The position numbers and the translations under genes were made by a program. A DNA stretch of 64,000 nt, taken from assembly GCA_025558095.1 (NCBI GenBank), contig JAIVFI010000028.1, positions 543,113 through 607,112 of the forward strand, read 5' to 3'. Below, in pieces: positions 26,550 through 64,000 of this stretch. The notes below the pieces were generated by a model. It was not told the origin of the DNA and did no database searches. It saw nothing but the letters and a program-made list of their open reading frames with translations. The DNA comes from Hyaloraphidium curvatum SAG 235-1 (lineage: Eukaryota; Fungi; Monoblepharomycota). Position 1 is the first letter of the stretch. Each line of letters starts with the position of its first letter.

Positions 26550-27600
26550 CTACGCCTTCGCCTCGCCGGTGTAGTCGAAAATGACGTGCTCGGTCGTCAT
26601 GAAGCACCTCGAGCGGTCCATCTGGACGAACCGCCTCTCGTCCTCGGCCATGGCAGCGCCACCCTTCGCGGCCGCCTCGTGGTCGGTGATGGCGGCGGCC
26701 TCCGCCGCCGAGACCCACACCTCCGTGATGCCGTCCAGCGGAGCCGCGAAGCCGCGCGGGGACTTGGTGAACGAGAGGTTGACGTCGTTGTGCACCGTGT
26801 GAGACTGGATGTACCGGCACATGGCGTTCGTCTTGGCAAAAGACGCGACGAGGGGACCATGGTCGACGAGCCAGGTGCGGTGGCACTCCTCCTGGGTCAT
26901 GCCGTCCTTGGCCGAGAGCAGGTAGGTGCACTTGGAGCAGTCGGCAGGGAGCTTGCCGCCCGTGTGGTCAAAGATCACGTGCTCTTCGGTGAAGAAGACC
27001 TGCGAGTTCTTGAAGTCGATGAACTTGCTCTCATCCTCGTCGAGGATCTTGGCGGCGATGGCGCCTTCGGGGGTCGCGTACGCCGCGCGGAAGTCCTCGA
27101 TCGAGTCCCACCAGACCTAGAGCCGAACATGTCGCAACGAAGCAACAATGAACAAGGAGTCGGAGGATGCCGCGGGGTGCGGGGAGCCGGTCAGCCGAAT
27201 GTCTCCCGCCGCCGCACCCGGTCTCCCACCTCGGTGATCCCGTCCACGGGCGGCAGCATGCCCCTCACGCTCCTCAGGGCTTCATTTGCCGGAGAGTCGA
27301 CGATGAGGTGGCTCTGGATGTACTTCCGCAGGCGGAGGGTCTTGGCCTGGCTCCGAACGAGCGGCCCTGCGGAGCGGGAAAGAGAATGAGGCCCCGAACC
27401 GGTCCGCGCGTACCCGAAGCCGAACAAAATCGTTGGAGACTGCAAACGGCTAAGCGGAGCGCCGCTTGGTCTGCGCCAGCTGCCAAGCTTCCGCGGATCC
27501 ATGTCCGGTGTGCCTCACCGTGCGTGTTCAGCCAATAGTCGTAGAACTGCTCCGGTGTCAGGTCCGGCCGCCTCGTGATGACGTAGACGAGCTTTAGCAT
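26550..27600 (-). CDS. Double EthD-domain protein, paralog 1 (2 introns)
   Basis: KLVYVITRRPDLTPEQFYDYWLNTHGPL...YIQSH...DGITEVW...DESKFID, repeated twice. Confidence 0.88.
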
Positions 27601-27995: not shown

Positions 27996-29106
27996 CTAGA
28001 GCCGCGCCGCGTCGCCGGTGTAGTCGAAGATCACGTGCTCCTTGGTCATGAAGCACCTCGACCTGTCCATCTGGACGAACCGCCGCTCGTCCTCGGCCAT
28101 GGCCGCCGCGCCCTTCCTCGCCGCCGCCCTGTCCGTGACTTTTGCCGCCTCGGCCTTCGAGATCCACACCTCCGTGATGCCGTCCAGCGGGGACATGTAG
28201 CCGCGCTCGGATTTGGCGATGGCCTGGTTGACCTCGTCGTGCACCGCGTGCGATTGGATGTAGCGGCACAGGGCGTTGCTCTTTGCGAATGAGGCGACCA
28301 GCGGGCCGTGGTCGTTGAGCCAGGTGCGGTGGCACTCTTCCTGGGTCAGGCCTTCCTTCGCCGACAGCAGGTAGGTGTTCTTTTCGCAGTCGTCGGGCAG
28401 CTTGCCGCCCGTGTGGTCGAAGATCAGGTGCTCCTTGGTCAGGAAGACCTGCGAGTTTTTGAAATCGATGAACTTGCGCTCATCCTCGTCGAGGATCTTG
28501 GCCGCCAGCTCGCCCTCGGGGGTCGCGTAGCCCGCGTTGCGGTCCTCGAGCGAGTCGTACCAGACCTGGAGCCAGAAGGCGGGAACATCGAGCCGCGGGA
28601 ACGAGGGCAAAGAAAGCGCCGGCATCGCGAGGAAAATGCCGTCAGGGAACGTTTCCCCGCGCCGCACGGAGCCTCCCACCTCGGTGATCCCGTCCACGGG
28701 TGGCAGCATCCCCCTCACCCTCCTCATGGGCTCGTTCCCGGGGTGGTCCCTGATGAGGTGGCTCTGCACGTACTTGCGGATCTTGAGCGCTTTGGCGTGG
28801 GCCTTGACCAGCGGGCCTGGCACCGAGGACGAAAGAAATGAGCCCGGGTTGCCGAAAAGGACGGGAAGGGGAGCGGCGGGAGACATCCGCCGTCTGCGGG
28901 CCCGACGCCGAGCGGCCTAGCCGAGCACTCCGCGGGTCCGCCGTAGACCAATTCCACATGATTGAGGATAACAAGGTTGATCCCCACGGATCTTTGCTCC
29001 CCAGTGACGCTGCCTTCTACCGACCGTGCGTGTTGAGCCAGTGCTCGTGGAACTGCTCCGGCGTGAGCTCCGGCCGGCGGGAGATGACGTAGACGAGCTT
29101 TATCAT
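27996..29106 (-). CDS. Double EthD-domain protein, paralog 2 (2 introns; ends ARL)
   Basis: Same motifs and intron positions as paralog 1; tandem duplicate. Confidence 0.88.
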
Positions 29107-45489: not shown

Positions 45490-46263
45490 TCAATCTTCGA
45501 GGACAAGCCGGTCGCCGACCCGTAGCACGCCCTCGCCCCTGTCCACGACCCTCGTCAGCACCCCGAGCCGGAAGTACCCGTCCTCGAACTGCCCCGCCGG
45601 CGAACCCGCCGGCATCGTCCTCCTCCGCCCCTCCACGAACCGCCTCTGGAACCCGGCGATCATCTCCCCCGTCGCCGGATCCCGCGCCGGCACCCCGCAC
45701 CGCACGCAGATGCCCGTGCCCTCGAAGGCGACCGGGCCGATCCGGAAACTGCCGGGCGCGCCCTCGCGCGGGCCCGCGAGGCGGTCCTCGAAGAACGCCG
45801 GCACCCCGTCGACCTCGAGGTTGGCCCGGAACCTTGCACGCGCCTCGTCGAGCGACAGGCCGAACCACGAGCCGACGGCCTCGAGGGAGGCGGTGGAAAC
45901 GACCGTGGGGCCCGGGGACTCCTCGTCGTCGGGGAAGCCCCGGTCCGCGTCCTCCTCCACGCGTACGGGGTACCCCAGCGCGCGGGAAAAGTGCCCCGCG
46001 ATGCCGTCCAGGTCCGAAAGCGCGTACGAGACCTCCTCCCCGTCCTCGGAACGTAGCACAACGCGGTCCAAACCCCCCGCGAACCGCGCGCGGGAACTTA
46101 TGACCCGCGGCTCGCGCTTCCCGTTCACGAACCGGCCCTTGGCGTCGACGAGGGCCAGCCGGCGGTCCCATGCCAGGGCACCAGAGGGGAGAACGGGGGA
46201 GGAGGGGAGGGAGAGCGCGGGGAGCGATTTGATGGGGTGGACGGAGATGCGAGCGAGGTGCAT
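45490..46263 (-). CDS. MOSC domain protein
   Basis: HPIKSL, WDRRLAL, RFRANL, CVRC, GVLRVGD. Confidence 0.88.
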   Translation of the reverse strand: MHLARISVHPIKSLPALSLPSSPVLPSGALAWDRRLALVDAKGRFVNGKREPRVISSRARFAGGLDRVVLRSEDGEEVSYALSDLDGIAGHFSRALGYPVRVEEDADRGFPDDEESPGPTVVSTASLEAVGSWFGLSLDEARARFRANLEVDGVPAFFEDRLAGPREGAPGSFRIGPVAFEGTGICVRCGVPARDPATGEMIAGFQRRFVEGRRRTMPAGSPAGQFEDGYFRLGVLTRVVDRGEGVLRVGDRLVLED

Positions 46264-46446
46264 CCGGGTGGAGGGGTCCGGAGGGGGATCCAACAAAAGC
46301 AGACGCGTTCTCCCGTCACGAAAGAAGTGTTTGCACGCGTCGATCGGCCATTCCGAGGCCGCCCCGGGAAGTTGTTTGGACGCGCGTCGCGCTTTGTCTC
46401 CCTTCTTTTCCCGAACTTGGCCACCGACCCACCCACAAACGCAACC

Positions 46447-47782
46447 ATGTCCCTCCCGACGACGATGCGCGCCGCGGTCATGCGCGGCCAGAACAGCAAG
46501 CTGACGATCGAGGAGCTGCCGCTGCCGGCCGTCGGCGACGACGAGCTGCTCATGAAGGTCGGACCCGCCGCCGGCCTGGCAACGTCGGGCGCTGACCGGC
46601 GGCCAATCTGTCCTCCAGGTCGAAGCCTGCGGCATCTGCCACACCGTGGGTTCATGTTTGGCCGTTGCCGACCGCCGGCGGACGGGATGGACCTCCCTGC
46701 CGCTCCCCCGACGTCGTGCAAGCGGCCCCTTCAAACACCGACGCTGACCGCCCTTCCCCACAGGACGCCCTCCTCAACCAGGTGCTCCCCCTCCCCGCCG
46801 AAGTCCCTCACTTGTTAGGCCACGAGGGCGCCGGCACCGTCGCCGCGGTCGGCAAGAACGTCACCGGGTGGTCCGTGGGCGACCGGATCCTCTCCCCCAT
46901 GCACTCGGGGAGCTGCGGCGAATGCGGGTACTGCACGCGCGGGATCCCGACCCAGTGCGCAAAGAAGATCTGGCACGCCATCTCCAAGCCCGGGTTCTTT
47001 GCCGAGTACGCCGCCGTCAACCCGGCCAACTCGGTCAGGATCCCCGACGGCGTGAGCTTCGAGCAGGCCGGGCCCATCGGGTGCGCGGGGGTGACGGTGC
47101 ACTCGGGGCTGCGCAAGTGCGGGGCCAAGCCGGGGGAGCTGGTGGGAATCTCGGGTGCGGGAGGGCTGGGGCAGCTCGCGGTGCAGATCGCCAAGTCGAT
47201 GGGGATGACGGTCGGTCGCGCCTGGCCGGTGCCCCGGGGAGAGTCGGCTCACGCTCGGCGCGTTCGTGCAGGTGGTCGCGATCGACGTGGACGACGAGAA
47301 GCTCGAGACGGCAAAGAAGCTCGGAGCCACCCATGCGGTCAACGCCAAGGACCCCGACCTCCCCGCCGCGCTGCGCGCCCTCCCCGGGTGCGAGGAGGGG
47401 CTGCAGGCCCTGCTCGTTGTGACCAACGCCAACCCGGCGTTCGAGGTGGCGCCCAAGCTGCTCCGCGGCGGCGGGACGGCGGTGTTCATCGGCGTGCCGA
47501 GCGCCGAGATGAAGCTGGACCCGTACATGGTGCTCAACAAGGAGATCAGGGTCATGGGGTCGTTCCTGGGCAACGTCGAGGTGGGTTTCCCGGCCGGCCG
47601 CCGGCAGCCGGACCGCGCTGACGCTCGGTGTGCAGGACGCGGCCGCGGCGCTCAAGCTCATCGCCGAGGGCAAGATCAAGCCCCTCACCACGCCGTGCGC
47701 GCTCGAGGACATCAACGACGTGTTCCACAAGATGGACCACGGCAGGATCGCGGACCGGTTCGTAGTGACCAAGTTCCGTTAG
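46447..47782 (+). CDS. Zinc-dependent alcohol dehydrogenase (MDR), 4 introns
   Basis: CGICHTD, LGHEGAG, CGECGYC...C, CAGVT, GAGGLG. Confidence 0.93.
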
Positions 47783-49294: not shown

Positions 49295-50713
49295 TCACGG
49301 AGACCGACCCACCGCCGCCTTGGTCCTCTCGTTCAGCTCCTCCCATGCCGTCTGGTCCGCGACCGTCCAGCACGCCGGCGCCCCGGCCTCCGCCGCGCCC
49401 TCCGCCGCCTCCACGTCCGCCCAGTACCGCGCCTGCTCCCCGGCCGTCCGCGGAACCGAGGCCAGGCCGCGGCGCCAGGCGTCGGCCGCTTCCGCCGCGC
49501 GCCGCGCAAACTCCCGGGGGTCGGGCGCCACGGCGACCGTGTTCCAGAGGGTCCGCGCCTCGCACCACTCGTCGGGGCAGGTGCAGTTCGCCGGCAGCGG
49601 GCCCCAGTGCGTGAGCTGCCCCTCGGCGCCGCGGATCTGCAGGGGGAAGTGGGAGAGCGGCACCGCGGGCGCTAGCGAGGACAGGATGCCCTGCACGAGG
49701 CCGTGGTGCTCCGCAGGGACGGCGTGGGGGTAGACTTCCAGCACGGCCGAGAAGGGGGGCAGGAAAAGCAGGTGGCCGAGGGCGGCGCCGTGGACGAGGA
49801 CCAACAGGTCCGTTTGCGCGGCGAGGCGGACCTGCGCGGGGGGGTCGAGGGAGGCAAAGTCGACGATCCCGGGGGCGCGGCCGCCGCCGAGCCAGGTCAG
49901 GGTGGCGTTCATGGCGGCGAGGGCGTGCGGGGCGAAGCGGCGCGTCCGGGTGCGCTGCACGACGGTGATCCGGGGGTGGAGGCGCGGCGGGGGTGCGGCG
50001 GCGGGCTCCGTCGCGCCGATGTCTGCAAAGATCCCGCGGCGCACGTGCACGGCGGCGTCGGGGGGTTCGAACGTGCGGTTCGCGATCCCTTCGGGCCCGA
50101 GACAGTGCCCGCGGTGGGTGCAGGCGGCGCGCGTGCCGGCAACGAGCCGGCCCACCCTGAACGTGCCGGCATCGCGATGCACCAGCCGCACGCCCGGAGC
50201 CAGCGCGGACAACAAGCGCTCGTCCAGGTTCCCGCGCCCGTTGCTGTCAAGGGCGAACAGCGCGAACGGCTTCGTGGTGCCGTCCGCGGCGACCCCGCCG
50301 ACCGCATCCCACGCCATGGAAGTCGCCGGCACGACCTCCTCGAAAAGCACATGGTACAGGTTGCGCGGGCTGAGGCGGCCCAGCATGACGCCCGCAGGCA
50401 CGTCCTCGGCGCCGGCCGCAAGGGCGGCCCACTCGCCGCGGTGCCGCACGGCACGCACGTCGCACCCGGCCGTTTGGGCTGCCGGGTTGTTGGCGATCGA
50501 GCACAGCAGCGGCGGGACTGCCCCCGCGCCACCCGGGTCGAGGAAGTAGACCGTGCCGTTGGCCACGAGCGCGTCGCGGAACACGCAGCGGGCGGCGTCG
50601 CGCGTGCTGCCCGAGCAGACCGCCGGCCCCTCCCCGCCGCCGCGGCGCCGGCCCTGCAGGAGAAGGGCCGCGAGAACGGTGGCGAGCAGCACCGGGCGGG
50701 GCAGGCCCCACAT
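49295..50713 (-). CDS. Glycosyltransferase family 61 (DUF563) with N-terminal signal anchor
   Basis: NLYHVLFE, ITVVQRTRTRRF, QVRLAAQTDLLVLVHGAALGHLLFLPPFSAVLEVYP; starts MWGLPRPVLLATVLAALLL. Confidence 0.85.
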   Translation of the reverse strand: MWGLPRPVLLATVLAALLLQGRRRGGGEGPAVCSGSTRDAARCVFRDALVANGTVYFLDPGGAGAVPPLLCSIANNPAAQTAGCDVRAVRHRGEWAALAAGAEDVPAGVMLGRLSPRNLYHVLFEEVVPATSMAWDAVGGVAADGTTKPFALFALDSNGRGNLDERLLSALAPGVRLVHRDAGTFRVGRLVAGTRAACTHRGHCLGPEGIANRTFEPPDAAVHVRRGIFADIGATEPAAAPPPRLHPRITVVQRTRTRRFAPHALAAMNATLTWLGGGRAPGIVDFASLDPPAQVRLAAQTDLLVLVHGAALGHLLFLPPFSAVLEVYPHAVPAEHHGLVQGILSSLAPAVPLSHFPLQIRGAEGQLTHWGPLPANCTCPDEWCEARTLWNTVAVAPDPREFARRAAEAADAWRRGLASVPRTAGEQARYWADVEAAEGAAEAGAPACWTVADQTAWEELNERTKAAVGRSP

Positions 50714-50782
50714 CCCCAGCAGGGATCCGTGCCAAGGGGTTAGGGATTGGTCGGGTGCTGACGCGACGCTCCGCAGCCGGAC

Positions 50783-51556
50783 ATGCACGCGCACCACCGC
50801 AGCGCGCTCGAGCGCATCGTGCGGCGCTTCCAAGCCGATCCGGATGCGTTGGCGCTGATCGTCGTCGGGTCGGTGGCGCGGGGCGACGCGCGCCCGGACT
50901 CGGACGTCGACGCGTACCTCGTGGTGACCGACGAGCGGTTCGCGGACGGCCGGCGCGAGTGGAACGCGGACGACCTCTGCGACTGGCACGGTGGCACCGC
51001 CGGGGGACCCATCGTCGACCTCGGCTTCCTCCGGGACGCGGCGGAACGCGCGCCCGAGCCGCTGCGCTACGCGTTCACGAACGCGTTCGTCGCCTTCTCG
51101 CGCGTGCCGGACCTGCAGGAACTGCTCGACCGCATCCCCGTATACCAGGGCCGCGAGCGCGCCGGGAAGCTCGCCGGCTTCGCGGGCCAGCTCCCCGTCC
51201 ACCTGGCCTACCTGCGGCTGGGCGAATACAGCCGGAACGCCTACCTGCTGGCGGAACCGGCGGTGGAGCTCGTGCTTTACGGCGGGCGCCTGATTCTGGC
51301 GCACAACCGCATGCTGTACCCCGGCCGCAAGTGGTTCATGAGGGAGCTGGCCCGCGCGCCGGTCAAGCCCGAGGCCATGGTGCGGCTGGCGGAGGAGCTG
51401 CTCGCCGCACCGAGCATAGCACGCGCCGAGGCGTTCTGCGGCGCGGTGCTGGGGTTCGCGGCCTGGCCGCAGCCGCCGGAGGGGGCGACGGCGCGGTTCC
51501 GCCGCGACCGGGAGGATCACTGGCGCAGCGGGGCCCCGCCACTCGCGGACTGCTGA
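50783..51556 (+). CDS. Pol-beta-superfamily nucleotidyltransferase domain protein, bacterial type, single exon
   Basis: GSVARGDARPDSDVD motif; C-terminal helical part with RLILAHNRMLYPGRKW. Confidence 0.85.
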   Translation: MHAHHRSALERIVRRFQADPDALALIVVGSVARGDARPDSDVDAYLVVTDERFADGRREWNADDLCDWHGGTAGGPIVDLGFLRDAAERAPEPLRYAFTNAFVAFSRVPDLQELLDRIPVYQGRERAGKLAGFAGQLPVHLAYLRLGEYSRNAYLLAEPAVELVLYGGRLILAHNRMLYPGRKWFMRELARAPVKPEAMVRLAEELLAAPSIARAEAFCGAVLGFAAWPQPPEGATARFRRDREDHWRSGAPPLADC

Positions 51557-53116
51557 CCGCCCGCCGCACGGGGAGTGTCCTCCCACCCCCATGTTATACA
51601 TCGCGACACGCCATATGCATTACATACGTACGTCCGCCCATTTGTGATGGATGAGAGTATCGATCTGGAGGTGTTCTCGACGTGGGAGAGGTTTCGCGAT
51701 GGCCTGACGGACAGATCTGTCCAGCTGGCTGCTTCTGACCGAATCAAGGAATTACTCTACCGTTCGTCAGAACCTTTTATGGGCGTCACAATAATCCGTA
51801 TAAAAGATTCGATTGGATGTTTCGTGTATCTTTTGAGTTCAATCCACTGGCGTGATTGGATGGTTTCGATGTCGACCGATTCCCAGACTGGACATACATA
51901 TCTTGGCTTTGGGAGCTTTCCGTTCCTGGGTCTCCGGTGGATTCTGCTGGGCACATAAGCCAATCCAGGGCACCATCGCGGAGTTGCTGCGCCCTCCAGA
52001 GGGCTCAGAATACCACGATACGACATTAGACTTACATCAGCTATGGACCGCTCTCGCACCATTGGCATCTGCAAATTTCTCGGTGATGCTGATTTTGCTT
52101 CCTTCTTCCGTCTTTCCATGCTCTTCTCGAAGAAGGTCTCCGCCGCGCCCAAGATCCTGCGCTTAGCACTCCGTTCCTCGTTGTCCAGGCGGAATGGCGA
52201 CCCTTCCAGTATCCATGACCACGTCCCCAGGTCCCATAGGCCGTGACCGTGTTCTGTACCGAGCTCTCGCACCCGCTTGGCCAGCTCTTGCCGCAGGTCT
52301 TCGTTCCGGCTGCAGCCGAAAAGTAGATGCAGCTCGTCATCAATCTCTCCTCGGTCGTGTTTGCAGGTCCGCCGGTCCTTCGGCCAGTTTGGTAGCGCCT
52401 GTGTACCTGCATGATACGAGCGTGTTCTCCATCCCCGTGAGCAGACGGATTAGAGCACGTCTCCGCGATTCCACCTCGATCTCCAACGCTGGATTAAACC
52501 CGAACGCTATGGCCGATGTCCTTGCTCGCTGTGGAAGAAGTGCCGCGATGACTTGACCTGTCAGCAAGGTCTCACTGCCTGATCCTGATCGAATGAGGGA
52601 GTTACTCCCCCGTTCATCAGAGCTCCTGATTTTCAAAAAGCTCTGCATGGCGAATTCCGGTCGATGGTTTCGATGCGGACCGAGTCAGGGACTGGCTGGA
52701 CATGTGAGGTTCCAGGAGGGGTGACGACTCCATTGCTCCCCATGCCACGCACGTGGACCGCTGTAGCCATGCGAATTGCATCCCGTTAGATATAGATTCA
52801 CCCATTCGGTCAATCTGGAGCACATCTGGTCCCAGCCAAGCGGAATGCTCCGAGCTGTCTCCCAGAGGAAATGCCGCGCGCGACTTTCTCGCATCGCCCC
52901 GCCGCATCCGCATCTCCCTTCCCAACCCAATATCTCCCGATTCGAGGTTGGCAACGATGTGTAATGATCCGTCTCCGATGGAGCTTTGCGCGGCGCACGG
53001 CCGCGGGGCGGCAGAGAGAACATGTCGTCCGCCAACGTCCGCATTCCCCGGCGCACCAACGGCCGGGCGCCCCAGCGAAAGGACACCCCGTTTGACGGAG
53101 GACGCATGGAGCCACC

Positions 53117-53360
53117 GAATGAACACCGCAGCATCCGGTTGTGCGCCAGGATCAGGCGTCCGCCGTACAGCACGGGCTCCACTGCCGTTTCCGCCGGCAG
53201 GTAGGCGTTCCGGCCGCTATCGCCCGGCCGCAGGCAGGCCGGGCGAACGGGGGGCCGGCCCGCGAAGCCGGCCAGCTTCCCTGCGCGTTCGCGGCCCCGG
53301 TAGACGGGGATGCGGTGGGGCACTTCCTGCGGGTCGGGGCGCGCGGAGGCGACGAGGGAC
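53117..53360 (-). pseudogene. Inverted partial degenerate copy of the nucleotidyltransferase gene (about 51090-51340)
   Basis: HRIPVYRGRERAGKLAGFAG...RNAYL..E.AVE.VLYGGRLILAHNRML aligns with 50783-51556. Confidence 0.85.
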
Positions 53361-53389
53361 GGAAGGGGCGCCTCGCCGCTCCGGATCCG

Positions 53390-54430
53390 ATGCGCTTCCC
53401 GACGGCCCTCGCCGCCGGCGCGGCGGCCGCCCTCGCGCTGCTATCCGCGCACGCGTTCTTTGGCCGTCCGGAACCGCCGCGCGCGGCCGGCGGCCCCCCG
53501 CGGATCGCGGCGTGCGCGGTGGTGCGCGACGCGTCGGCCGATCTGCCCGAGTGGCTCGCGTACCACCGCGGCATCGGCGTCTCGCGGTTCCTCGTGTTCG
53601 ACGACGGCTCGCGCCCGCCGCTGCGCATCGATGCGCCGGACGTCGAGGTGTCCCGCGTGGCGGGCACGCGCGCGGCCCCCGGCGAGGACAAGCCGCCGTT
53701 CGCGCGCACGGCGCAGGGCGTCGGCTACGCGCGGTGCGCCGTCCGGTGCGCGGACTTCGACTGGATGCTTTTCGTCGACCCGGACGAGTTCGTCATGCTG
53801 CGATCGCCGCGGCCGTCGCTCCCCCAGTTCCTCTCCCGCCCGCACATCCGCGACGCGTCGGCGGTCTGCCTCAACTGGATCGTGTTTGCCGCCCCGCCCG
53901 GCACCCCGCGGTCGGCCAACGGCACCCTCGCGGGCTACTCGCGCTGCGCAGGGCCGGGGTTCGTCAAGAGCAGCGCGTTCAAGGCGGTCGCCAACTGCCG
54001 GCACCTCGTGGGGATGGCGTCGCCGCACAACCCCACCTCGTGGGGATGGCGTCGCCGCACAACCCCGTGGTGCGGGATGATCCCCCGGGGGAGCCGGGCG
54101 CGGGGCCGGGCGGGGTCGACGCGCTGGGGTGGCTGGTGGCGGTGATCAGCCCGTAGAGATCTGATCAGCCCGTTCAACACGCGGGAGCAGGTGGCCGCGC
54201 CCGTGGCGGTGCACCACTACATGTATCGCTCGGACGAGGAGGTGCGCGAGAAGCTGGCCAAGGGCGGCGCGGACGGCAAGGTGCGCACCGAGGAGGAGCG
54301 AAGGTTGGCGGCGGCGGCGGCGAACGCAACGTGCGATTACCTGCAGAGGAGGGTCAGGAAATGCTGCCCGCTGGTCATGGACTGGGACAGCGTTCCCCCG
54401 CCGCTGTACGGGGACGTCGGAAACGATTGA
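53390..54430 (+). pseudogene. GT92/GT2-like glycosyltransferase with signal anchor, disrupted by a 32-bp and a 19-bp insertion
   Basis: ACAVVRD...LPEWLAYH..IGVSRFLVFDDGS, DWMLFVDPDEF, HHYMYRSDEE; TGA at 54143. Confidence 0.75.
54002..54065 (+). repeat. Perfect 32-bp tandem duplication
   Basis: cacctcgtggggatggcgtcgccgcacaaccc x2. Confidence 0.95.
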
Positions 54431-54813
54431 TTGGCCCGGCCGGCCGACACGTGGTGGTGCCGTCGGTTCGCTATGGGTACCTTTCCATCGCCGCCCGCTC
54501 GGCCGCCTCCATCGCCGCCTCTGCCTTGGCAGCCCTCCCCTGGACCCGCACCGCGTCCCTCCCTCCGCCGGGTCTGGCTCCTTCGGGAACGCCCCTGGTG
54601 GGGCCGGTAGAGCGCCCGGGACCCCATCCTCGAGGGTGGGACAAGGCTGCCGGGACCAAACTCGACTTGAATCAGCAGTTCCGCACCGTAGCTTCACCAT
54701 GCATCTCGGAAATCCGACGGTGGCCTTGTCCCGTCCTGGTCCTCGTCCGACGCCAGGGGCACGGACGGCTGTTTGCTGCGCTCCGCAGATCGCCCACCCC
54801 AATGCATGGCAGC

Positions 54814-55968
54814 TCACCCCCCGCACGGCTCCGCGATCCGCGCCAGCACCTCCCCCGCGCTCCCCTGCAGGGCCTCCAGCCATCCCCTCCCCGCCTCGCC
54901 CACTTTCCCCGCATCCACCGCCTCGAACCCCCCCGCGAGGACCTCCCCCGCCTCCCGCACGGCGCCCTTGGCCGCGTGCCCGACGCCCGAGTAGTAGTCC
55001 GCGAACTTGGTCCAGGGCTCGGAGCCGCCCGGAGGCAGGAGGACGCGGGAGGGCACGCCGTACGCGTCGGCGAGGGCGGCGCCGTGCAGCGAGCCAGAGA
55101 CCACCGCGCGCGCAGAGGTCAGCCGGAGGACGAGGTCCAGCGCGGGCGCGGTAGAGGGGGTGAAGGCCATGTAGACGGGGCGGAGGCACCCGAAGGTGGA
55201 TTCGAGGGCCTGGAGGGAGGGGTGCGGGAGGCCGGCGGAGGAGAGGGCCGCGAGGTCCGGGGCGGAAAAGTGGGCGGAGGGGAGGAGGCGGCCCGAGGGG
55301 GAGAAGGAAGAAGAGAGGATGCGGGCGGCGGCATGCTGGTGCAGGTGTATCGCCAGGGCGAGGCACGTCCGCCTGTGGGGAAGCACGTAGAGGGAGGGGA
55401 AGAGGAGGGGCATGGCGAGCACGGGGTCGCCGACGGACACCCTTACCGCACTCTTCAGCGGGATACCCGAGGGCGCGGTGCACGGCGCCGACGGACCGCC
55501 GGGGCACACGAGGTCCATCGAGAGGCGGCCGCGGGTCGCGAGGAGCAGCGCGTCCCCCGCCGACGCGTCCCCGGCCGTCCCGTTAACGTCCGCCCGCTCC
55601 AGCTTGGTGCCCATGCCGGCGAGCACGTCCCCTGGTTGGAGGAAATATGCCGGCGCGTGTAGCTCCGAGCCGACCATGACCAGCTTGCCCCGCGCCGAAA
55701 ACTCCGCGCGGCGGACCGACACGCGCTTCCCCGCGGCCCGCTCCAGGGCGGCGCGGAGGATCACCGGCACCAGCGCGTCGCCCAGGTTTTCGACCGCCAC
55801 GTCCGCGCAGCCCACCGGCCACCACGTCGCGCGCACGCAGATTTCGGGCGGGGGCGGCGGCGCGGGAGCGGGCGGGCGGGCGAGCAGCAGCCGCAGGCCA
55901 AACAGGAGACAGGAGAGGAGGAGGAGCAGGAGCGGCAGGGGGAGCCGGCCCCGGAGCACCGCGGCCAT
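54814..55968 (-). CDS. Polysaccharide pyruvyltransferase family protein with signal anchor
   Basis: NLGDAL, TRGRLS, GDPVLAMP, VVSGSLHGAALADAYGVP, KFADYY; starts MAAVLRGRLPLPLLLLLL. Confidence 0.85.
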   Translation of the reverse strand: MAAVLRGRLPLPLLLLLLSCLLFGLRLLLARPPAPAPPPPPEICVRATWWPVGCADVAVENLGDALVPVILRAALERAAGKRVSVRRAEFSARGKLVMVGSELHAPAYFLQPGDVLAGMGTKLERADVNGTAGDASAGDALLLATRGRLSMDLVCPGGPSAPCTAPSGIPLKSAVRVSVGDPVLAMPLLFPSLYVLPHRRTCLALAIHLHQHAAARILSSSFSPSGRLLPSAHFSAPDLAALSSAGLPHPSLQALESTFGCLRPVYMAFTPSTAPALDLVLRLTSARAVVSGSLHGAALADAYGVPSRVLLPPGGSEPWTKFADYYSGVGHAAKGAVREAGEVLAGGFEAVDAGKVGEAGRGWLEALQGSAGEVLARIAEPCGG

Positions 55969-56179
55969 GTCGGCGATTCGAAAGGGGGAGTGGAAAACGG
56001 AAGTCCCTTGGGGATCCGTGCCGCAAGGATTCCCGCCCGCTGTCCCCTCTGTTTCGGGAGCGCACTGCGACGGGCCGGCCTCGTGCGGCACCCTCTGCCG
56101 CGGCTGCCCGGCCGCGCACCCCCCTCGGCCCGCGCCGCCCGCTCCCCTAACCCCCCGCACCCAAACAGCCATCCGATGG

Positions 56180-56605
56180 AGCGCCGCCCCGATCGCCGCC
56201 GAACTCGCGGGGAGGTTCGCCATCGAGCGCCCCGGGCTGCCCGCCTTTGCCCTGACGGAACCCTGCGTGCTGACCGCCGTGGGCAACGACTACTCGTGCG
56301 AGCGGGTGTTTGCGCGCCAGGTCGAGGCCGCGTGCGGGCCGGGGGACGTGCTGCTCGCCATCACGACGTCGGGGACCTCGCCAAACATCCTGGCGGCCCT
56401 CGCCGCCACCAAGCGCAAGGGCGCGGCGACAATCGCGCTGTGCGGACTGGGCGGGCAGATGGACGACGCGGACGTGAGGGTCAGGGTGCCGTCGAGGGAC
56501 ACGCCGCGCGTGCAGGAGGTGCAGATGCTGCTGGGGCACGCCATCTGCGAGATGGTCGAGCGGGAAATGTTCGGGGGAGGGGACGCAGGCGACGCAATGG
56601 ACTGA
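56180..56605 (+). pseudogene. gmhA: Phosphoheptose (sedoheptulose-7-P) isomerase GmhA, N-terminally truncated
   Basis: IAAELAGRF..ERPGLPAFAL, LTAVGNDY..ERVFARQV, GDVLLAITTSGTSPNI, TPRVQE...GHAICE; no in-frame ATG and no GNGGS motif. Confidence 0.85.
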
Positions 56606-56651
56606 GCTGCCTGTGCGAGCTGCGTGTGCGATATCCTTCACTACCCATTGC

Positions 56652-58184
56652 TCAAATAACGAGCGCCGCGTGCCGTTCCGGCCCAGGCTGCCCCTCGGTC
56701 CGCGCCCTCATTCTCTTAGCCGCGTGCAACGCCGCCCTATTCTCCCACAGCTCCTCCAGCGCCGCCCTCGCGTTCCGCGCCGCGGCCTCGGGCCCCCTCT
56801 CCCTGCGCACCCACCTCCCGCCGCGCCGGCCGACCTCCCGCGCCCTGTCCGGGTCGGATGCGATCGCCCGCATGATCCCCGCCGCGGCATGCACGTCCGG
56901 TTCCGGCCACCCGGGGTTGAGGTACGTCCCCTCCTCCGCCGGGCACCCCGTGCCATTGTCGCGCCCCTCGCCGATCCGATCGGGCCACCGCACGGGGACG
57001 AGGTACTCCCAACCGGGCGGCTGGAAATCCAGGTTCCCCGAGTAGTTGGTCGCCACCACGGGCTTCCCCATCGCCAGCGCCTGGTACATCCCCAGGCCGA
57101 CGCCCTCGGCGCGGTGCAGGCTCGCGTAGGCGTCGCAGGCGGCAAAGAGCGCGCGCATGCCCGCGGGGGGCAGGGTGCGCGAGACGACGGCGACGGAGGG
57201 GTGGGTAGATGCGAGGGAGACGACGGCGGGCCAGCCGGAGGTGGTGTTGGCGCAGTTGTGGGCTTTGAGGAGCAGGCGCGGGCGGGTGCCAGGCCGGGGC
57301 GGCGGTTGCCCCGGCGGGAAGGCGAGGAGGAAGGCCTGCACGAGCCCCAGGGGGTTCTTGCGGTGCACCGACGAGAGGCAGTCCATGGTGAAGAGGAAGA
57401 CGTAGTCGCCGGGGAGGAAGCCCAGCTCGCTGCGGGCGGCGGCGACCTCGTGCGCGGGGGGTTCTCCCGAACCGACGAACTCGGGGGAGTACGTCTCCCG
57501 CACCGCGCGCACGGGCAGAGCGGTCCATTTCCGGAAAGTCGCGGCGACGAACTCCGAGTGGGCCCAAATGCCGTCGAGCGAGGCGAGCTTGCGCAGCCAG
57601 TCGCGGGGGATGACCTCGGTCTCGAGCGGAATCCACGCCACCGCGAGGGCGTCGCGGTCGGGGCGGAAGGAACCGGTGGTCGCCGCCTCGAACACGACGT
57701 CGAGCAGGTCCAACGCGACCCCCGTCAGCGAGACGAAGTAGCCGTGGGGCGCGCGGCAGTCCATCCCCGCCACGTCCGCCCCTCCCGCCCTCAATTCGGC
57801 CAGCAGCGCCTCCCACGCCTCCTTGTCCGTCTTGTGCGGGGTAGAGACGACGTCGTGGGCGTCGCACGCGCGCACGGGGATGCCGGCCAGCGCGAGGGTG
57901 CGCAGGAAGGAGCGCGAGCCGGCGGCGATGCCGAACTGTCCCGAGAACCAGGAGTAGAACGCCACGCCGAACGTTTTCTCGGCCGAGTGGTTCTCCGACG
58001 AGCCGGCGTCCGGCCGCGAGAAGGCGTCGAGTGTCCGCGGGAATTCAGCCGACGCGAGGGCGGAGAGGCCGTCCCGGGCCGGTTCGCGGGCGGGCCCCAC
58101 CGGGAGCGCCCCATGGAGGCGCAGACGGAGCACCGTCAGGAGGCTCAAGGCCGCGCTGAGGGTCGCGAGGAGCCTTTTCTGCAT
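56652..58184 (-). CDS. GT4 (group 1) glycosyltransferase with signal anchor
   Basis: SSVHRKNPLGLVQAF, ACDAYASLHRAEGVGLG, GKPVVATNYSGNLDF, WPEPD. Confidence 0.88.
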   Translation of the reverse strand: MQKRLLATLSAALSLLTVLRLRLHGALPVGPAREPARDGLSALASAEFPRTLDAFSRPDAGSSENHSAEKTFGVAFYSWFSGQFGIAAGSRSFLRTLALAGIPVRACDAHDVVSTPHKTDKEAWEALLAELRAGGADVAGMDCRAPHGYFVSLTGVALDLLDVVFEAATTGSFRPDRDALAVAWIPLETEVIPRDWLRKLASLDGIWAHSEFVAATFRKWTALPVRAVRETYSPEFVGSGEPPAHEVAAARSELGFLPGDYVFLFTMDCLSSVHRKNPLGLVQAFLLAFPPGQPPPRPGTRPRLLLKAHNCANTTSGWPAVVSLASTHPSVAVVSRTLPPAGMRALFAACDAYASLHRAEGVGLGMYQALAMGKPVVATNYSGNLDFQPPGWEYLVPVRWPDRIGEGRDNGTGCPAEEGTYLNPGWPEPDVHAAAGIMRAIASDPDRAREVGRRGGRWVRRERGPEAAARNARAALEELWENRAALHAAKRMRARTEGQPGPERHAALVI

Positions 58185-58574
58185 TTCCGAGTCGCAGGTA
58201 TCGGCGTCGTCCCTCGGCACGGCCACCTCCCGGATCCTTGCCGGAAGCCACGCTTCGGCAGCGGCACGAAGACCTCCGGTTGCCGCTAAGAGCTCCGCCG
58301 GGCGCACCTTCTCGCCTCTTGCGGGTTGCCTGGAGCCCAGAGGCGGAGGCGGCGGCGGGCGGCCCCACCAGCCCGCCTATATCGGCCGGCGACTCTCCGC
58401 GCTTCGCCAAGCCCAATCTCCTTGCACTTAGGCACCCTTGGTGAGTCCACCGGGGCTGTGAGAGGCCGTGCTGAACTGTGCCACCGCCCTTACCGAGTCG
58501 CCCTTTCGGCCGCGACGCGTCTACAAAGGGCGCGATCCCTCAGCGATCCCCATCTTTCGTCCTTTGGTGGCCGC

Positions 58575-60179
58575 ATGGCCGGCGGCCCCCGCGAGCTCCG
58601 GCCGGCCGTGTTCGTCGACCGCGACGGCACGCTGAACCCTGATGCGGGACACACGCACCGCGCCGAGGATTTTCGGCTGTTCCCCGGCGCCGCGGACGCG
58701 CTGCGGCGACTCGCGGGGAGGGGCTTCCTGCTCGCGGTGGTGACGAACCAGGGGGGCATCGGGCGGGGGCTCTACACGGAGGGGCACTTCGAGGCGGTCA
58801 CGGACCACATGCATTCGCTGCTGGCGGCGGAGGGCGCGCGGGTCGACGCGGTGGTGCACTGTCCCCACGCGCCCGACGCGCGGTGCCGCTGCCGGAAACC
58901 CGAGCCGGGCATGTTCGTGGCCGCTGCTACCAGTCTCAGCATCGACCTCGCGGCTTCGTTTGCCGTGGGCGACCGGCCATCGGACCTCATCGCCGCGCGC
59001 ACCGCGGGGATCCCCCGGTGCGCGCTCGTGCACTGCGGCGAGCCGCTGCCCTTTGCCGCGGACCGGCACGCCGATTTCGCGGGCGACGACCTCTCCGCCG
59101 CCGCCCGCTGGATCCTTTCCTTCCCGCCGCCCTCTCCCCGCCTCCCCGCCCACCCCTCCCGCGCCCTCGCCCGCGCGCCCCTCCGCGTCGGCCTCGCGGG
59201 GGGCGGCACCGACGTCCCCCCCTTCCCCTCGCTGCACGGCGGCGCCGCCCTCGCCCTCGCCATCTCCCTCTCCGCCCGCGCGGAGGTGTGCCTCCTGCCC
59301 CCGGGGTCCCCGTGCCGCTTCCTCACCCCGGACCTCGGCCAGTCCCTCTCGCACGACCCGTCGGAGCTCGCCCTCCCCCCGTCGGATTCGCCGTGCCTCC
59401 TCCCCCTTGCCGCTTATCGGCACTTTGCCCTCCTCCGCGGCCCATTTTCCTGCCTCGCCTCGATCCGCTCGGACGCGCCGCCGGGCTCCGGTTTAGGCGG
59501 ATCCTCCGCGTGCCTGGTGGCCCTCGTTAGGGGGTTTGCGGCGGTCTTGGGAATCCCAATGTCGGCGCGGGAGGTCGCCGAGGCGTGCTGCACGATCGAG
59601 AGGGGGGACCTGGCGATGCCGGGAGGCGGGCAGGACGCGTTTTCGGCGGCATCCGGTGGGGTGAACCTTTTCACGTTTCCCAAGGGAGAGGGAGAGATCG
59701 GCATACGGAGGATCATCCCGGGGCAACGCACGGTCGAGGGGCTGGAGGGATTGGTGCTTCGGTGCTCCGGGGCGGGGCGGCCGCCCGGGACGGGGCACGC
59801 CGCTCGGGCCGACCGGGACGCGCTGGACCACGGGGAGGAGGAGGCGCTGCTGCGGATGAAGGGCGCGGCGCTGGCGGCCGCGGACGCGCTCGAACGGGAC
59901 GACTGGCCGGCTGCGGCGGCCGCGATCGCCGCGTCGTGGTCGGCCAAGCCCTCGGGCGGGAGCGTTCCGGCGGTCGTCGCGGCGCTCGGGGCCGGTGCGG
60001 CAGCTGCCAAGGTGTGCGGCGCGGGGGGCGGCGGGTTCGCCGTCGCGCTGTGCGGGGCGGAGGCGAGGGAGGCGGTGGAGCGGGCGCTGGCGGAGGCGTC
60101 GTCGGCCGGTTGGACGGTTCCGGTGAGGCTGGCGTTCGCGGGTGCGACGGCGGAGATCGCACCCCCCGACGGGCCGTAG
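58575..60179 (+). CDS. gmhB-hddA: Fusion of GmhB (heptose-1,7-bisphosphate phosphatase, HAD) and HddA (heptose-7-phosphate kinase, GHMP)
   Basis: AVFVDRDGTLN, VTNQGGIGRG, CPH...CRCRKPEPGM, VGDRPSD; then RAPLRVGLAGGGTD, PPGSGLGGSS, IER..L...GGGQD, KVCGAGGGGF in one ORF. Confidence 0.92.
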   Translation: MAGGPRELRPAVFVDRDGTLNPDAGHTHRAEDFRLFPGAADALRRLAGRGFLLAVVTNQGGIGRGLYTEGHFEAVTDHMHSLLAAEGARVDAVVHCPHAPDARCRCRKPEPGMFVAAATSLSIDLAASFAVGDRPSDLIAARTAGIPRCALVHCGEPLPFAADRHADFAGDDLSAAARWILSFPPPSPRLPAHPSRALARAPLRVGLAGGGTDVPPFPSLHGGAALALAISLSARAEVCLLPPGSPCRFLTPDLGQSLSHDPSELALPPSDSPCLLPLAAYRHFALLRGPFSCLASIRSDAPPGSGLGGSSACLVALVRGFAAVLGIPMSAREVAEACCTIERGDLAMPGGGQDAFSAASGGVNLFTFPKGEGEIGIRRIIPGQRTVEGLEGLVLRCSGAGRPPGTGHAARADRDALDHGEEEALLRMKGAALAAADALERDDWPAAAAAIAASWSAKPSGGSVPAVVAALGAGAAAAKVCGAGGGGFAVALCGAEAREAVERALAEASSAGWTVPVRLAFAGATAEIAPPDGP

Positions 60180-60236
60180 ATTTCTCGGCAATGCGAGCTC
60201 GTGACGTAACCTGCCCCCTGGCAGTTCACACTGGCC

Positions 60237-61502
60237 TCATCCTTCGCCCACAACGCGGTCCCTCGCAACGCCGCCCGCCAGCAGCCCCTCCAGCTCGCAC
60301 GCGTGCAGCCCTCCCGCGAACCCCTCGACGTCCCCCCGCCCGTACGACACCGCGTACCAGTCCCCCACCCGCGACAGTCCGGAGAGGAACCCCTGCCCGC
60401 TCTCGGGCCCGAACGCGCGGAACGGCCGTCCGGCGCGCAGCAACGCGTACGGCGGGAGCGCCGAGAACGAGTAGGCAAAGAAGTGGTACACGTTGGGCCA
60501 GGTGCCATTGTCAAAATGCCCGATCGCGACGCGTTCGGTAGGGGAGTGGGGGACACCCTGCGAGCCGCCGTGGACCTCAGCGGAGGGGACGCCGAGCTGG
60601 GCGGCCAGACCGGGAAAGGAGGTCCGCGCGACCTCGTCGCAGGCTCCGGTGCGGTCAATGTCGCAGCGGAGGACGACGTGCGGGTCGAGGGAGTAGGAGA
60701 GGAGGAGCTCGCCCACGCGGGACACGAAGGGGATCCAGTTGCGCTCCGTCGGGCGCATGTTGGGGGTCGAGAGGTAGACAACCGAACGCGGGGCAAGCTT
60801 CGGCACGCTCTCTTCGGCAGACGACGCGCCGTTGGGGAAGCTCAGCGCCAGCAGTTCTTCGAGGTCCGCGAGCACGGCGGCAATGCGCTGCGACGCGCAC
60901 GCGCGCGGGTGCGGCGACTTGGCGAGAACGAGCAGCCGCCCGTCAGGCAGCACGACGGGCCGCGGATCCAGATAGCCGTGGTACGGCGCGAGCGGGCACT
61001 CGCTGCGCTCCGAGGGGTGCGGCGCCGCGTCGAGGTGCACGAAGCGGCCCGGCTCGAGGTCCGCCAGACGCCCGCGGAAACGGAATTCCGGCGTGCGGGG
61101 GAAGCGGAAGGCGCGCAACACAACAAAAAAGTTCCCCTGCGGCGGCCACTTCTCGCCCTCGCGCGTCGGGGTCGAGCCGTTGAACGAGGCACGGAACGCG
61201 ACCAGCGCGAATCCCCGTTGGGAGAGCACCTCCGCGTCCTCCGCGGCCACCGACGGATTCGCGAGCAATATCCACGGCGGAAGAGCAGGGAAACGCGGCG
61301 GCACATCGTCCAGCCGCGATTCGGAGGCGGCGAGGGCGGCGGGGATGCCCGAAGGGAGCAGCGGCGTGCGGAGGCCCGGCGGGAGCGCGCAGACCGCCGG
61401 CGCCGGTGCCGCATCGAACGAAGACACTGGGGAGCGAAGGATGAGCCAGGCCGCGGCGAGGGCGGCGGCGGCGGCCACGGGGAGCACGCGGTAGCGCGGC
61501 AT
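60237..61502 (-). CDS. Five-bladed beta-propeller glyco-enzyme (GH130/GT91/GT108-like mannosyltransferase or phosphorylase) with signal anchor
   Basis: NPSV, LDPR, ERNWIPF, YSLDPH, HGGS, FLSGL...SYGRGD motifs; hydrophobic N-terminus. Confidence 0.7.
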   Translation of the reverse strand: MPRYRVLPVAAAAALAAAWLILRSPVSSFDAAPAPAVCALPPGLRTPLLPSGIPAALAASESRLDDVPPRFPALPPWILLANPSVAAEDAEVLSQRGFALVAFRASFNGSTPTREGEKWPPQGNFFVVLRAFRFPRTPEFRFRGRLADLEPGRFVHLDAAPHPSERSECPLAPYHGYLDPRPVVLPDGRLLVLAKSPHPRACASQRIAAVLADLEELLALSFPNGASSAEESVPKLAPRSVVYLSTPNMRPTERNWIPFVSRVGELLLSYSLDPHVVLRCDIDRTGACDEVARTSFPGLAAQLGVPSAEVHGGSQGVPHSPTERVAIGHFDNGTWPNVYHFFAYSFSALPPYALLRAGRPFRAFGPESGQGFLSGLSRVGDWYAVSYGRGDVEGFAGGLHACELEGLLAGGVARDRVVGEG

Positions 61503-61953
61503 TGGTGGCCCGGGGCGGGACGGCCGTACCGGATACCGCGCGCCCCCCCCGGGCCCGAATCAGTGCCAGCGTCCGAATCGAGCTGCAAGCGCTGCACGAT
61601 GCGTTGGAACGCTTCCGAACGAGCCGAAAATTACACTCAGAGAGTTGGCATCCGCGATGGGAGGGTCACAAAGGAGTGCGGGGAATGAGTACTAGACTGG
61701 GACAAGACCGACTTTCGGCGCCAGCAATCCGTTGGGCGGCTGCACGGGCACTGGAAGGAGGTAGTGGAAGGAGGGCTAGCCACCCGCCGAGCTCCGCTAA
61801 TCCTCCCACTGGACAACGTCCAGCAGGGCTACTGTCATGACGGGGGGCGGAAGCCCCGTGTAGACCTGTCTTGACGACGTTGAGGAGTCACTACACAGCA
61901 CTGCGCCTAGTCTTCCCTATGGCGGGTGCGTCCAGGATTATGCATAATCCCTA

Positions 61954-63733
61954 CAGTCCGGTGCGGGGTACTTGAGCGGCAAACTTCCAAACACAACTTC
62001 GTCTCGTTCCCCACACACCAATTACATCGTTTTCGCCTAGAAAATCTACAGAGACGCGTCCAATAGAGCCGCCTGCACGGCAGTGGGGCTGGGGTTTCGC
62101 CCGGCTTGGATTTCGGCCCAGGCGTCGGCGTTCATTGCCAGCGCTAGAGCGACCTCCGCGTCAAACTCCTCGTCCAGCGCTTCCTGGACCGTCACAGCCA
62201 ATCCGTCGCTTTCATCTTCATCGTCCTCGTCGGGAATGGGCTGGACGGCGTCCCCAGAATCGTCCGCATCGCTCTCGAGCTCGTTGTCGACGACCATCTC
62301 TGCGGTCCGAAAAGAGCGACTGCGAGGCTCCGGCGGCACCAGAGCTGCCTCCTCCTCATCGTCATCGTCAATGTGAATGACCATGGTTGCATCCTGGCGG
62401 CGGTACTCGTCCTCTTCCTTCTCAGCATGAATGACGAGCCTCTCCCATGCGGCAGCATCCACCAGCGCAAACCCCTCCTCCAGAAGGACCTTGACGTCGG
62501 CAAACTTGCGCGACTCGTTGTTCTCAGCAACGCGGTTCTTTGCGCGGGCCCACGCAAGCTCGATGGGGTTCAGTTTGGGGTGGTACGGGGGAAGGAAGTG
62601 GAGGTAGATGTCGAACTCGAGTGCCAGCTGGTCAATGAAGCGTTCCGGCTGGTATCCGAGCTCCTGCAGCAGCTTGCGAAGGTCCTTGACGGTAAAGCCG
62701 CCTCCAGTCTTCGTTTTGCGCGCCGTGAGCTGCTCCATTGTGTAAAGAGTCGTGCCCATGTCCATGATGGCCTTGGCGAGATCTGCCTTCTTGGTCAGCT
62801 GCGAGATCCGTTTTTGACCCTCCACAGGTGCAATGTGGTACGCAGCATTGTCCATGTGTACGTGGATCTCGCCCTCCGGGTCCTTTTTGCGCATCTTCCG
62901 AAATGCACCCCGAGCCCACTCTTCAAAGTGCCTCGCATTCATGGATCCGTGGTAATCCGCCAGCTTATGATCGCCCTGGAACACTTTGGGAGGCTCGAGC
63001 CATCCGTATCTCGATCCACAGCCGATGATGCACCACCGCTTTCCGTACCCGTCCGGGTGGGGAACCTCATCGCCGGGACGATACCAGGTAAAGTTGCTGA
63101 CGTGATTTTGATGGACGTACGATTCATCGAGCCAGTACTGGGGTGAAGAGTCAGCAGGAGCTCAGAACAGCAGCGAGGGAGGGACTTACCGAGACGACTT
63201 TCTTGTCGGGCTCCTTCTCCCCTTTGCGAATCCGGTACCGCTCTCGCAGGTACTCATACCGCCGCACATGGATGTTTGGAGTCATGACAACGATCTTGTG
63301 GCCTCCAATCTCCTTGTATCCGAAGCCCAGGTGCTTGCAGAGGGCACGCACGTATCGAAGACTGAAGAATCGGTTGAATTCCCGCACCATTTCCTTCTGT
63401 AGCTTCTTGGTACGGACACGGCACATTGCCCTGTGCTGTTTGCTGACGTAGTCGATGACAAATGCGTTCCATTCCGTCGTCGTGTTGAAGGTTCGATCAG
63501 ATCTGCGGTCCGCCCACAAGGCCACCTTGCCGCTCCTTTCAAACTCGTTGTACAGCTGCCTGATGGTCCCTTCCGAGGCCCCAACCATCTGCGCAACCTT
63601 TTTGACTGGATCACCGACTCCCATGGCCTTCTTGTGGTGTAGAATCCGGAGGTATGCTTTCCGGAGGTCGTATGACAGCGGTTCTCCGGGCTTCCTGTTT
63701 AGCACTTCGGGGATGCCGAGCATTCTGATATTC
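61954..63733 (-). mobile_element. IS630/Tc1/mariner-type DNA transposon with long DD96E spacer (Sailor-like), 5'-truncated
   Basis: Transposase gene inside; putative end TA|CAGT at 61952-61957; no matching terminus upstream of the ORF. Confidence 0.75.
62046..63723 (-). CDS. DDE transposase; intron 63138-63189
   Basis: HTH-like N-terminus, LGFGYK, YWLDESYVH, DYHGSMN, MDNAAYH, LPPYHPKLNPIELAW; GTAAGT..CTGAC..CAG intron. Confidence 0.9.
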
Positions 63734-63884
63734 TCCCCTCCGCTGAGGTCCACGGCGGCTCGCAGGGTGTCCCCCACTCCCCTACCGAACGCGTCGCGAT
63801 CGGGCATTTTGACAATGGCACCTGGCCCAACGTGTACCACTTCTTTGCCTACTCGTTCTCGGCGCTCCCGCCGTACGCGTTGCT
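63734..63884 (+). repeat. 151-bp perfect inverted copy of 60439-60589
   Basis: Base-by-base reverse complement; the paired endpoints both sum to 124323. Confidence 0.95.
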
Positions 63885-64000
63885 TTAGGGTTAGGTTAGG
63901 TTAGGTTAGGGTTAGGGTTAGGTTAGGTTAGGTTAGGTTAGGTTAGGTTAGGTTAGGTTAGGTTAGGTTAGGTTAGGTAGGTTAGGTTAGGTTAGGTTAG
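63885..64000 (+). repeat. Telomeric repeat, mostly TTAGG with three TTAGGG units and one TAGG
   Basis: Direct reading; G-rich strand runs toward the contig end. Confidence 0.97.

Follow-up and report, generated by a model that had tools for sequence, protein, structure and literature searches.

A five-gene core at a chromosome end of Hyaloraphidium curvatum as a candidate Golgi pathway for a manno-heptose-containing glycan

The window analysed here comprises 64,000 nucleotides of Hyaloraphidium curvatum SAG 235-1 (C28:543113-607112, where C denotes a contig of the assembly) and is the telomeric terminus of a 607-kb contig. It carries a cluster of glycan genes that, on balance, probably encodes a Golgi route to a glycan that contains manno-heptose and is probably pyruvylated. 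H. curvatum belongs to the Monoblepharomycota, a lineage of early-diverging fungi, and its assembly spans 31.9 Mb in 55 contigs; two proteins encoded on further contigs are listed at NCBI under this species (KAI9023470.1 and KAI9019953.1). The proposed pathway centres on a core of five genes, namely gmhA, a gmhB-hddA fusion, a GT4 glycosyltransferase, a GH130/GT91-like propeller protein, and a polysaccharide pyruvyltransferase-like protein (PvT), which would have been assembled from genes of mixed origin in a common ancestor and then inherited. The same best explanation holds that the block of the sequenced H. curvatum strain, lying at an unstable telomere, has decayed in part and now relies on a gmhA at the end of another chromosome. 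A cytosolic GmhA encoded on C14 would isomerise sedoheptulose-7-phosphate, HddA would phosphorylate C1, and GmhB would remove the 7-phosphate to give D-glycero-alpha-D-manno-heptose-1-phosphate, as family membership and active-site residues suggest. Activation of this product to GDP-heptose would fall to an enzyme encoded elsewhere, in the simplest case the GDP-mannose pyrophosphorylase of the host, and the GDP-heptose would be carried into the Golgi; there, GT4, the propeller, or both may add heptose to a glycan that is secreted or belongs to the wall, and PvT may cap it. The product itself, with its heptose, pyruvate ketal, and surface location, we infer from sequence.

The core is conserved in a second organism. 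On a 23-kb Logan contig (SRR23967301, GC content 55%), the five genes are again adjacent, in changed order and orientation and with an intact gmhA, and show 48% (gmhB-hddA), 51% (GT4), 61% (gmhA), 54% (propeller), and 54% (PvT) identity to those of H. curvatum. The block is followed by two sulfotransferase-like open reading frames (ORFs) at the contig end. The contig is eukaryotic, with kinesin, MFS, and GST genes and canonical spliceosomal introns. An F-box-like gene flanking the block matches a gene on another H. curvatum contig (49-54%), a divergence equal to that of the cluster genes, and this one flanking gene suggests a monoblepharid affinity for the second organism. Codon usage of the cluster resembles that of the host in H. 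curvatum (GC content at third codon positions, GC3, 0.91 versus 0.87; correlation of relative synonymous codon usage, r 0.97) and in the second organism (GC3 0.57 versus 0.59; r 0.73). Among bacterial sequences, the two fungal HddA domains form one clade with support of 100, as do the two GmhAs. The shared block, the host-like codon usage, and the sister relationships of HddA and GmhA together argue for vertical inheritance from a common ancestor.

The core genes are mostly transcribed, as seen in RNA-like contigs from a public run that contains 76% of the words of positions 53300-61600. Contigs of this run on 53050-59049 cover PvT, what is left of gmhA, most of a GT2-like gene and of GT4, and the first part of gmhB-hddA, and are identical to the genome in the pieces listed; the propeller, a GT61-like gene, and a nucleotidyltransferase gene lie outside the covered range. 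One contig (depth 16, 29 letters on its short side) skips a 57-nt GT..AG intron at 58441-58497 on the plus strand, in the 5' untranslated region (UTR) of gmhB-hddA. The run is thus RNA-like and shows eukaryotic processing, and it confirms outside the assembly the lesions in two genes described below. The initial annotation had seen no need for introns in the intact ORFs; the absence of introns holds for the ORFs only, as this UTR has one. Because the block recurs in a second organism, has host-like codon usage, and carries a spliced UTR intron, the core appears old and inherited rather than a contaminant.

All eight genes of the initial annotation are present where it placed them, and six of their ORFs are intact: those of the GT61-like protein, a Pol-beta nucleotidyltransferase, PvT, GT4, the GmhB-HddA fusion, and the propeller. 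The four core genes among them encode PvT (54814-55968, minus strand, 384 amino acids (aa)), GT4 (GT-B fold; 56652-58184, minus strand, 510 aa), the fusion of a HAD phosphatase (GmhB) with a GHMP heptose-7-phosphate 1-kinase (HddA) (58575-60179, plus strand, 534 aa), and the five-bladed propeller (60237-61502, minus strand, 421 aa). Pfam recognises GmhB, HddA, SIS, GT4, and GT2_4 clearly, GT61 and pyruvyltransferase weakly, and the propeller not at all; its profiles recovered NTP_transf_2, GT2_4/GT92, SIS_2, and GT4, with HAD and GHMP together in the one 534-aa ORF. Hydropathy agrees with the annotated signal anchors on the glycan-modifying enzymes and their absence from GmhB-HddA and the nucleotidyltransferase: within the first 30 residues, the Kyte-Doolittle 17-residue maximum is 1.75-2.66 in the five luminal-type proteins and low in GmhB-HddA (0.93) and the nucleotidyltransferase (1.26). 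By this measure the anchors are conserved in both organisms, which supports a predicted eukaryotic type II layout of the transferases.

The cluster is less intact than the initial annotation described, with two of the eight genes broken. The gmhA of the window (56176-56605, plus strand) is a pseudogene: a frameshifting deletion just past the ATG at 56176 has removed about 75 codons, among them those of the GNGGS loop and of the first zinc histidine, and the GmhA core no longer shares the frame of this ATG. C14 carries an intact gmhA some 6 kb from its telomere (C14:746511-747167, KAI9023470.1). The two copies are 83% identical in DNA, and a value of 0.18 for their ratio of nonsynonymous to synonymous substitution rates (dN/dS) makes it probable that the window copy functioned until the deletion. 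Head-to-head with the C14 gmhA is an ORF of about 424 aa with a signal anchor but neither a Pfam match nor similarity to GT4; the pair spans C14:745142-747167. The second broken gene encodes a signal-anchored GT2_4/GT92-like protein (53390-54430, plus strand) and carries a 32-bp tandem duplication (54002-54066) and a 19-bp insertion (at about 54149-54167); the two together bring the reading frame back, but they enclose a TGA at 54143, ahead of the C-terminal HHY motif. Rescue of this gene by a new intron finds no support in the RNA-like contig on 54037-54816, which is unspliced and identical to the genome.

The heptose enzymes retain most of the residues expected of their families, and in PDB and NCBIfam they match GmhA, GmhB, and HddA/WcbL best. 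The zinc ligands of GmhA are H64, E68, Q175, and H183 (PMC5705639); all four are kept in the C14 protein (H84, E88, Q192, and H200) and in that of the second organism, but not in the window pseudogene. In WcbL, the essential kinase residues are R13, D22, S118-S120, Q162, and D163 (PMC4691232), and the HddA domains of both fungi keep R204, D213, S310, S311, Q353, and D354, with glycine in place of S118; Q353 corresponds to the heptose-binding Q162. The GmhB domain keeps D15xD17 and the zinc residues C96, H98, C104, and C106, and scores 172.5 and 177.8 bits with NF006506 (cut-off 178). Among the best 120 of 304 matches, a full-length fusion with GmhB in front of HddA occurs only in the two fungi; one bacterial or metagenomic ORF (P0113) with the reversed order lies on an error-prone contig. 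Among 80 bacterial relatives of gmhA, 25 have hddA and 29 have gmhB nearby, and the locus of the best relative (L053) reads GT4-hddC-hddA-gmhA-gmhB-GT4, near flagellin. A donor operon lacking hddC was rejected, since L053 has hddC. In the HddA tree, which was built by a quick method and has long branches, the fungal sequences stand apart from viral copies and point to no single donor lineage.

The propeller has no match to PF12141 (GT91). A profile search yielded 512 relatives, the nearest of which belong to an expanded family of Mastigamoeba balamuthi, and a structural model built from 90 rows reached a predicted local distance difference test (pLDDT) of 85. Its best structural matches act on manno-configured sugars, with Z scores (VIA) of 23.7 (5ayc), 23.0, 22.4, and 21.4 over about 290 residues; the best Foldseek match is 7fip (E 6e-9), and GH130 is the best family, with sequence identity to GH130, GT108, and GT91 of only 12-16%. 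Residues N82, R104, D179, H329, and D391 align with GH130 motifs; D179, the catalytic aspartate of the (E/Y)DPR motif, is invariant in the 90 rows, and H329 is present in 94%. The superfamily uses manno-configured sugars (GDP-mannose or alpha-mannose-1-phosphate), which fits a manno-heptose donor (PMC12814180). Beta-1,2 GH130 enzymes use both of these compounds (PMC12814180), and in GH130 the residue preceding the catalytic aspartate contacts O6 of the acceptor mannose and determines the linkage. In both fungal propellers the family glutamate at this position is L178, K254 is replaced by arginine, and R311 by histidine; the first two changes suggest a changed substrate. R254, H311, and H329 are candidates for the four phosphate contacts that confer phosphorylase activity in GH130. 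In M. balamuthi, at least seven members of the GH130/GT91-like propeller family are signal-anchored or fused (P0132, P0133, P0135-P0137, P0140, and P0141). Giant-virus proteins resemble the propeller in features and fold, and those of Pithovirus and other giant viruses are the nearest viral folds. A pattern scan of viral contigs gave no viral locus for GT4 or the propeller; among metagenome contigs, pattern scans gave no further propeller copies and, for GT4, only relatives at 24-35%.

The activation step is the gap in the proposed pathway. The initial annotation placed HddC outside the window or supposed it replaced; none is in the window, as it said, and none was found genome-wide, the nearest match being GDP-mannose pyrophosphorylase. 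A bacterial HddC query retrieves only this intron-bearing gene on C17 (32%, E 3e-10), which PF00483 also matches, together with a GalK-GalU fusion on C19, a glucuronokinase-like pair on C30, a four-domain fusion on C7, and a short match on C4. The C19, C30, and C7 proteins have their own kinases and are weak candidates for the activator. The Pol-beta nucleotidyltransferase of the window was considered as a substitute for HddC and set aside, as it has the wrong fold and is absent from the second block. Of the genes matched, the C19 fusion is GalK-like/GalU-like and 643 aa long, and on C30 a glucuronokinase-like kinase precedes an NTP transferase; both are bacterial-type sugar salvage genes. The C7 gene (about 690200-693350) is an intronless 1046-aa ORF with apparent HAD phosphatase, KdsD-like SIS isomerase, NTP transferase, and kinase-like domains, profile scoring having covered the NTP_transferase part; its domain content reads as a possible second nucleotide-sugar assembly line. 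More tentatively, fungi of the Hyaloraphidium lineage may make a pyruvylated glycoconjugate with manno-heptose in the secretory pathway without HddC, and the GH130/GT91-like propeller may be a new beta-heptosyltransferase whose donor is either heptose-1-phosphate itself or GDP-heptose supplied by the mannose pathway of the host.

Several observations weigh against a heptose glycan pathway. Neither PF00483 nor the bacterial query found HddC in the genome, a search that exon-split or very diverged genes could escape, and PF01467, searched for HldE, matches only choline-phosphate cytidylyltransferase-like and NMNAT-like genes. The scores of the heptose enzymes are all below the NCBIfam equivalog cut-offs, and HddA, the best family for its domain, is far under its own; fungal HddA sits on a long branch, with 35 of 88 conserved columns altered in one or both species, and GmhA D61 is E or Q in the fungal copies. 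The PS_pyruv_trans match of PvT (PF04230) is weak in the window protein (E 2e-3, 18.4 bits) and in its orthologue (E 2e-4, 21.7 bits), both under the cut-off of 25.3. The core is known from only two organisms, heptose genes lie near only one of 80 bacterial GT4 relatives, and two genes of the window are pseudogenes. The RNA evidence comes from one run of contigs, probably of the same strain, whose RNA label is a guess and which speaks to presence and not to level. Finally, some neighbours in the cluster may be incidental, given the many other glycosyltransferase and PvT loci of this genome.

The long HddA stem (1.96 changes per column), the altered columns, the missing activator, and the low scores could mean that the enzymes have drifted to another sugar, such as an octose or a modified hexose, or that they make a soluble metabolite while the transferases use GDP-mannose. 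SIS, GHMP, and HAD enzymes together also make the octose of lincomycin. The retention of Q353 and of the GmhA zinc ligands, and best matches that remain GmhA, GmhB, and HddA/WcbL, make such drift unlikely. Direct use of alpha-heptose-1-phosphate by the propeller, in the manner of a reversed GH130 phosphorylase, would explain why HddC is missing, and it agrees with the GH130 folds, the kept motif residues, the acceptance of alpha-mannose-1-phosphate by beta-1,2 GH130 enzymes, and a substrate change suggested by L178 and the K254 replacement. The propeller is, however, probably luminal, as its signal anchor and sequons indicate, and the sugar phosphate would have to be imported; moreover, BMT (GT91) is matched, weakly, by 25 of its 90 relatives and GH130 by 9, the family's R311 is histidine in both fungi, and a smaller number of phosphate contacts favours transferase activity (PMC12814180). 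We therefore regard direct use as rather unlikely.

Decay of the block raises another explanation, in which a pathway functional in the ancestor, and also in the second organism, is dying in this strain of H. curvatum: two genes, gmhA and the GT2/GT92-like one, are broken, and the block adjoins a transposon and a healed telomere. This is improbable in view of the intact gmhA paralogue, which is under purifying selection (dN/dS 0.18), and the other four core ORFs, all intact and three of them with RNA-like contigs. Linkage of the five genes could also be incidental if the genome piles up acquired glycan genes and the heptose enzymes serve other transferases, for example the ORF beside gmhA on C14 or the GT4 paralogues on C18 and C24. 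At least 11 further pyruvyltransferase-domain loci occur in H. curvatum (on C2, C14, C15, C17, C27, C33, C35, and C36), a large family that is unusual for a fungus, and with the two GT4 paralogues they make the window one of many glycan loci; the C14 gmhA is itself paired with another signal-anchored ORF. The same five genes have nonetheless stayed linked despite reordering and about 50% protein divergence, and the flanking host gene has not, so that incidental linkage is quite improbable. Most of the further PvT loci examined are long open frames and carry signal anchors. Both GT4 paralogues are intronless (C24:225296-226558 and C18:539700-540938; 43% and 38%); one lies near a GDP-mannose 4,6-dehydratase, and the other is head-to-head with a sulfotransferase. 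As to bacterial contamination or a chimeric join, suggested by three bacterial-type genes and ORFs without introns, the telomere-ended 607-kb contig, the host codon usage, the spliced UTR intron, the signal anchors, and a diverged block among intron-bearing genes elsewhere effectively exclude it. The initial annotation had proposed a horizontally assembled, eukaryote-adapted cluster and a search for further copies. The bacterial-type enzymes, eukaryotic anchors, transcription, and an intact homologous block on the SRR23967301 contig, together with the intact gmhA on C14, bear this out for a conserved core of only five of the eight genes; we saw no chimeric join, no unexpressed set lacking a homologous cluster, and no set of unrelated, vertically inherited genes.

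The remaining genes of the cluster, GT61-like, Pol-beta nucleotidyltransferase, and GT2/GT92-like, are not on the contig of the second organism, which ends inside the block. The GT61-like protein is signal-anchored and intact (49295-50713, minus strand, 472 aa), with a match to PF04577 below the cut-off (E 1e-4). The nucleotidyltransferase (50783-51556, plus strand, 257 aa) is intact, matches Pfam NTP_transf_2, is of the bacterial ANT/KNTase-like type, resembles actinobacterial and Chloroflexota proteins, and is probably a separate insertion. A partial inverted copy of its gene, 85% identical, lies at 53129-53355 on the minus strand. Between the gene and this copy (51600-53100), the GC content is lower (57-64%), possibly marking a remnant of a mobile element.

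The subtelomeric location and the intron-bearing flank reported in the initial annotation are both borne out. A telomere array of the unit GGTTA (TTAGG) on the plus strand ends the contig (63889-64000), and spliceosomal introns occur in the flank, as in an ADH gene (47212-47272 and 47582-47636). Pieces of an IS630/Tc1-type transposase (Pfam DDE_3 and HTH) lie at 62046-63733 on the minus strand, and an exact inverted 151-bp copy of part of the propeller gene (60439-60589) occupies 63734-63884 on the plus strand, immediately before the telomere. The succession of transposase pieces, inverted copy, and telomere at 61935-64000 resembles a healed chromosome break. Elsewhere in the window are a penicillin amidase-like ORF (14738-16393, minus strand), a MOSC-domain ORF (45490-46761, minus strand), and two pairs of local duplicates, one direct (26559-27393 and 28008-28845, 77%) and one inverted (2505-3237 and 7546-8290, 72%).

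Heptose is regarded as a sugar of bacterial envelopes, and the block joins the alpha-heptose route to Golgi-type transferases and names candidate enzymes. We found no report of heptose in fungi and no publication on this locus in the literature searched, which lacked most subscription journals; heptose goes unmentioned in a survey that covered the nucleotide-sugar enzymes of 491 fungi (PMC8092308), and what heptose enzymes do in eukaryotes has been called unsolved (PMC11573728). If the proposed pathway is real, the fungal glycome would be wider, eukaryotic heptosyltransferases would exist, and a bacterial operon would have been refitted to the secretory pathway by fusion, anchors, and a UTR intron. 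The host is cultured and sequenced, so the question is open to testing by routine glycan chemistry.

Among known systems, Pvg1 of Schizosaccharomyces pombe, a type II Golgi protein with a PS_pyruv_trans domain, is a precedent for pyruvylated fungal glycans. The window PvT differs from it in its weak domain match; a word search retrieved only the PvT itself, and no close homologue was found outside the two organisms. The propeller shares with GH130 phosphorylases, the GT108 MTPs of Leishmania, and the GT91 BMTs of yeast a five-bladed fold and the NPS, xDxR, xKNW, H, and YGxxD motifs, and with the BMTs a type II anchor; it departs from all three in that both fungal proteins replace E by L and K by R at positions likely to govern specificity, and in having no Pfam match. 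Heptose enzymes in eukaryotes are known from dinophytes and protostomes, where they follow a beta/ADP route of the HldE type without a phosphatase (Tang et al. 2024, as summarised in PMC11461863 and PMC11573728); these two commentaries name no fungi. As there described, the beta/ADP route is defined by its nucleotidyltransferase, whereas the genes of H. curvatum point to an alpha/HddA route with the phosphatase, without that nucleotidyltransferase, and with Golgi-type transferases. The closest likeness is to the bacterial GDP-D-glycero-alpha-D-manno-heptose pathway of the Burkholderia pseudomallei capsule, Campylobacter, and Aneurinibacillus (GmhA, HddA/WcbL, GmhB/WcbN, and HddC/WcbM): the first three families are the same, active-site residues of the kinase and isomerase are kept, and a GT4 gene adjoins, as in L053. 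In the fungus, by contrast, GmhB is fused before HddA, no HddC was found, the anchors are eukaryotic, an intron lies in the UTR, and the genes alternate in orientation rather than forming an operon.

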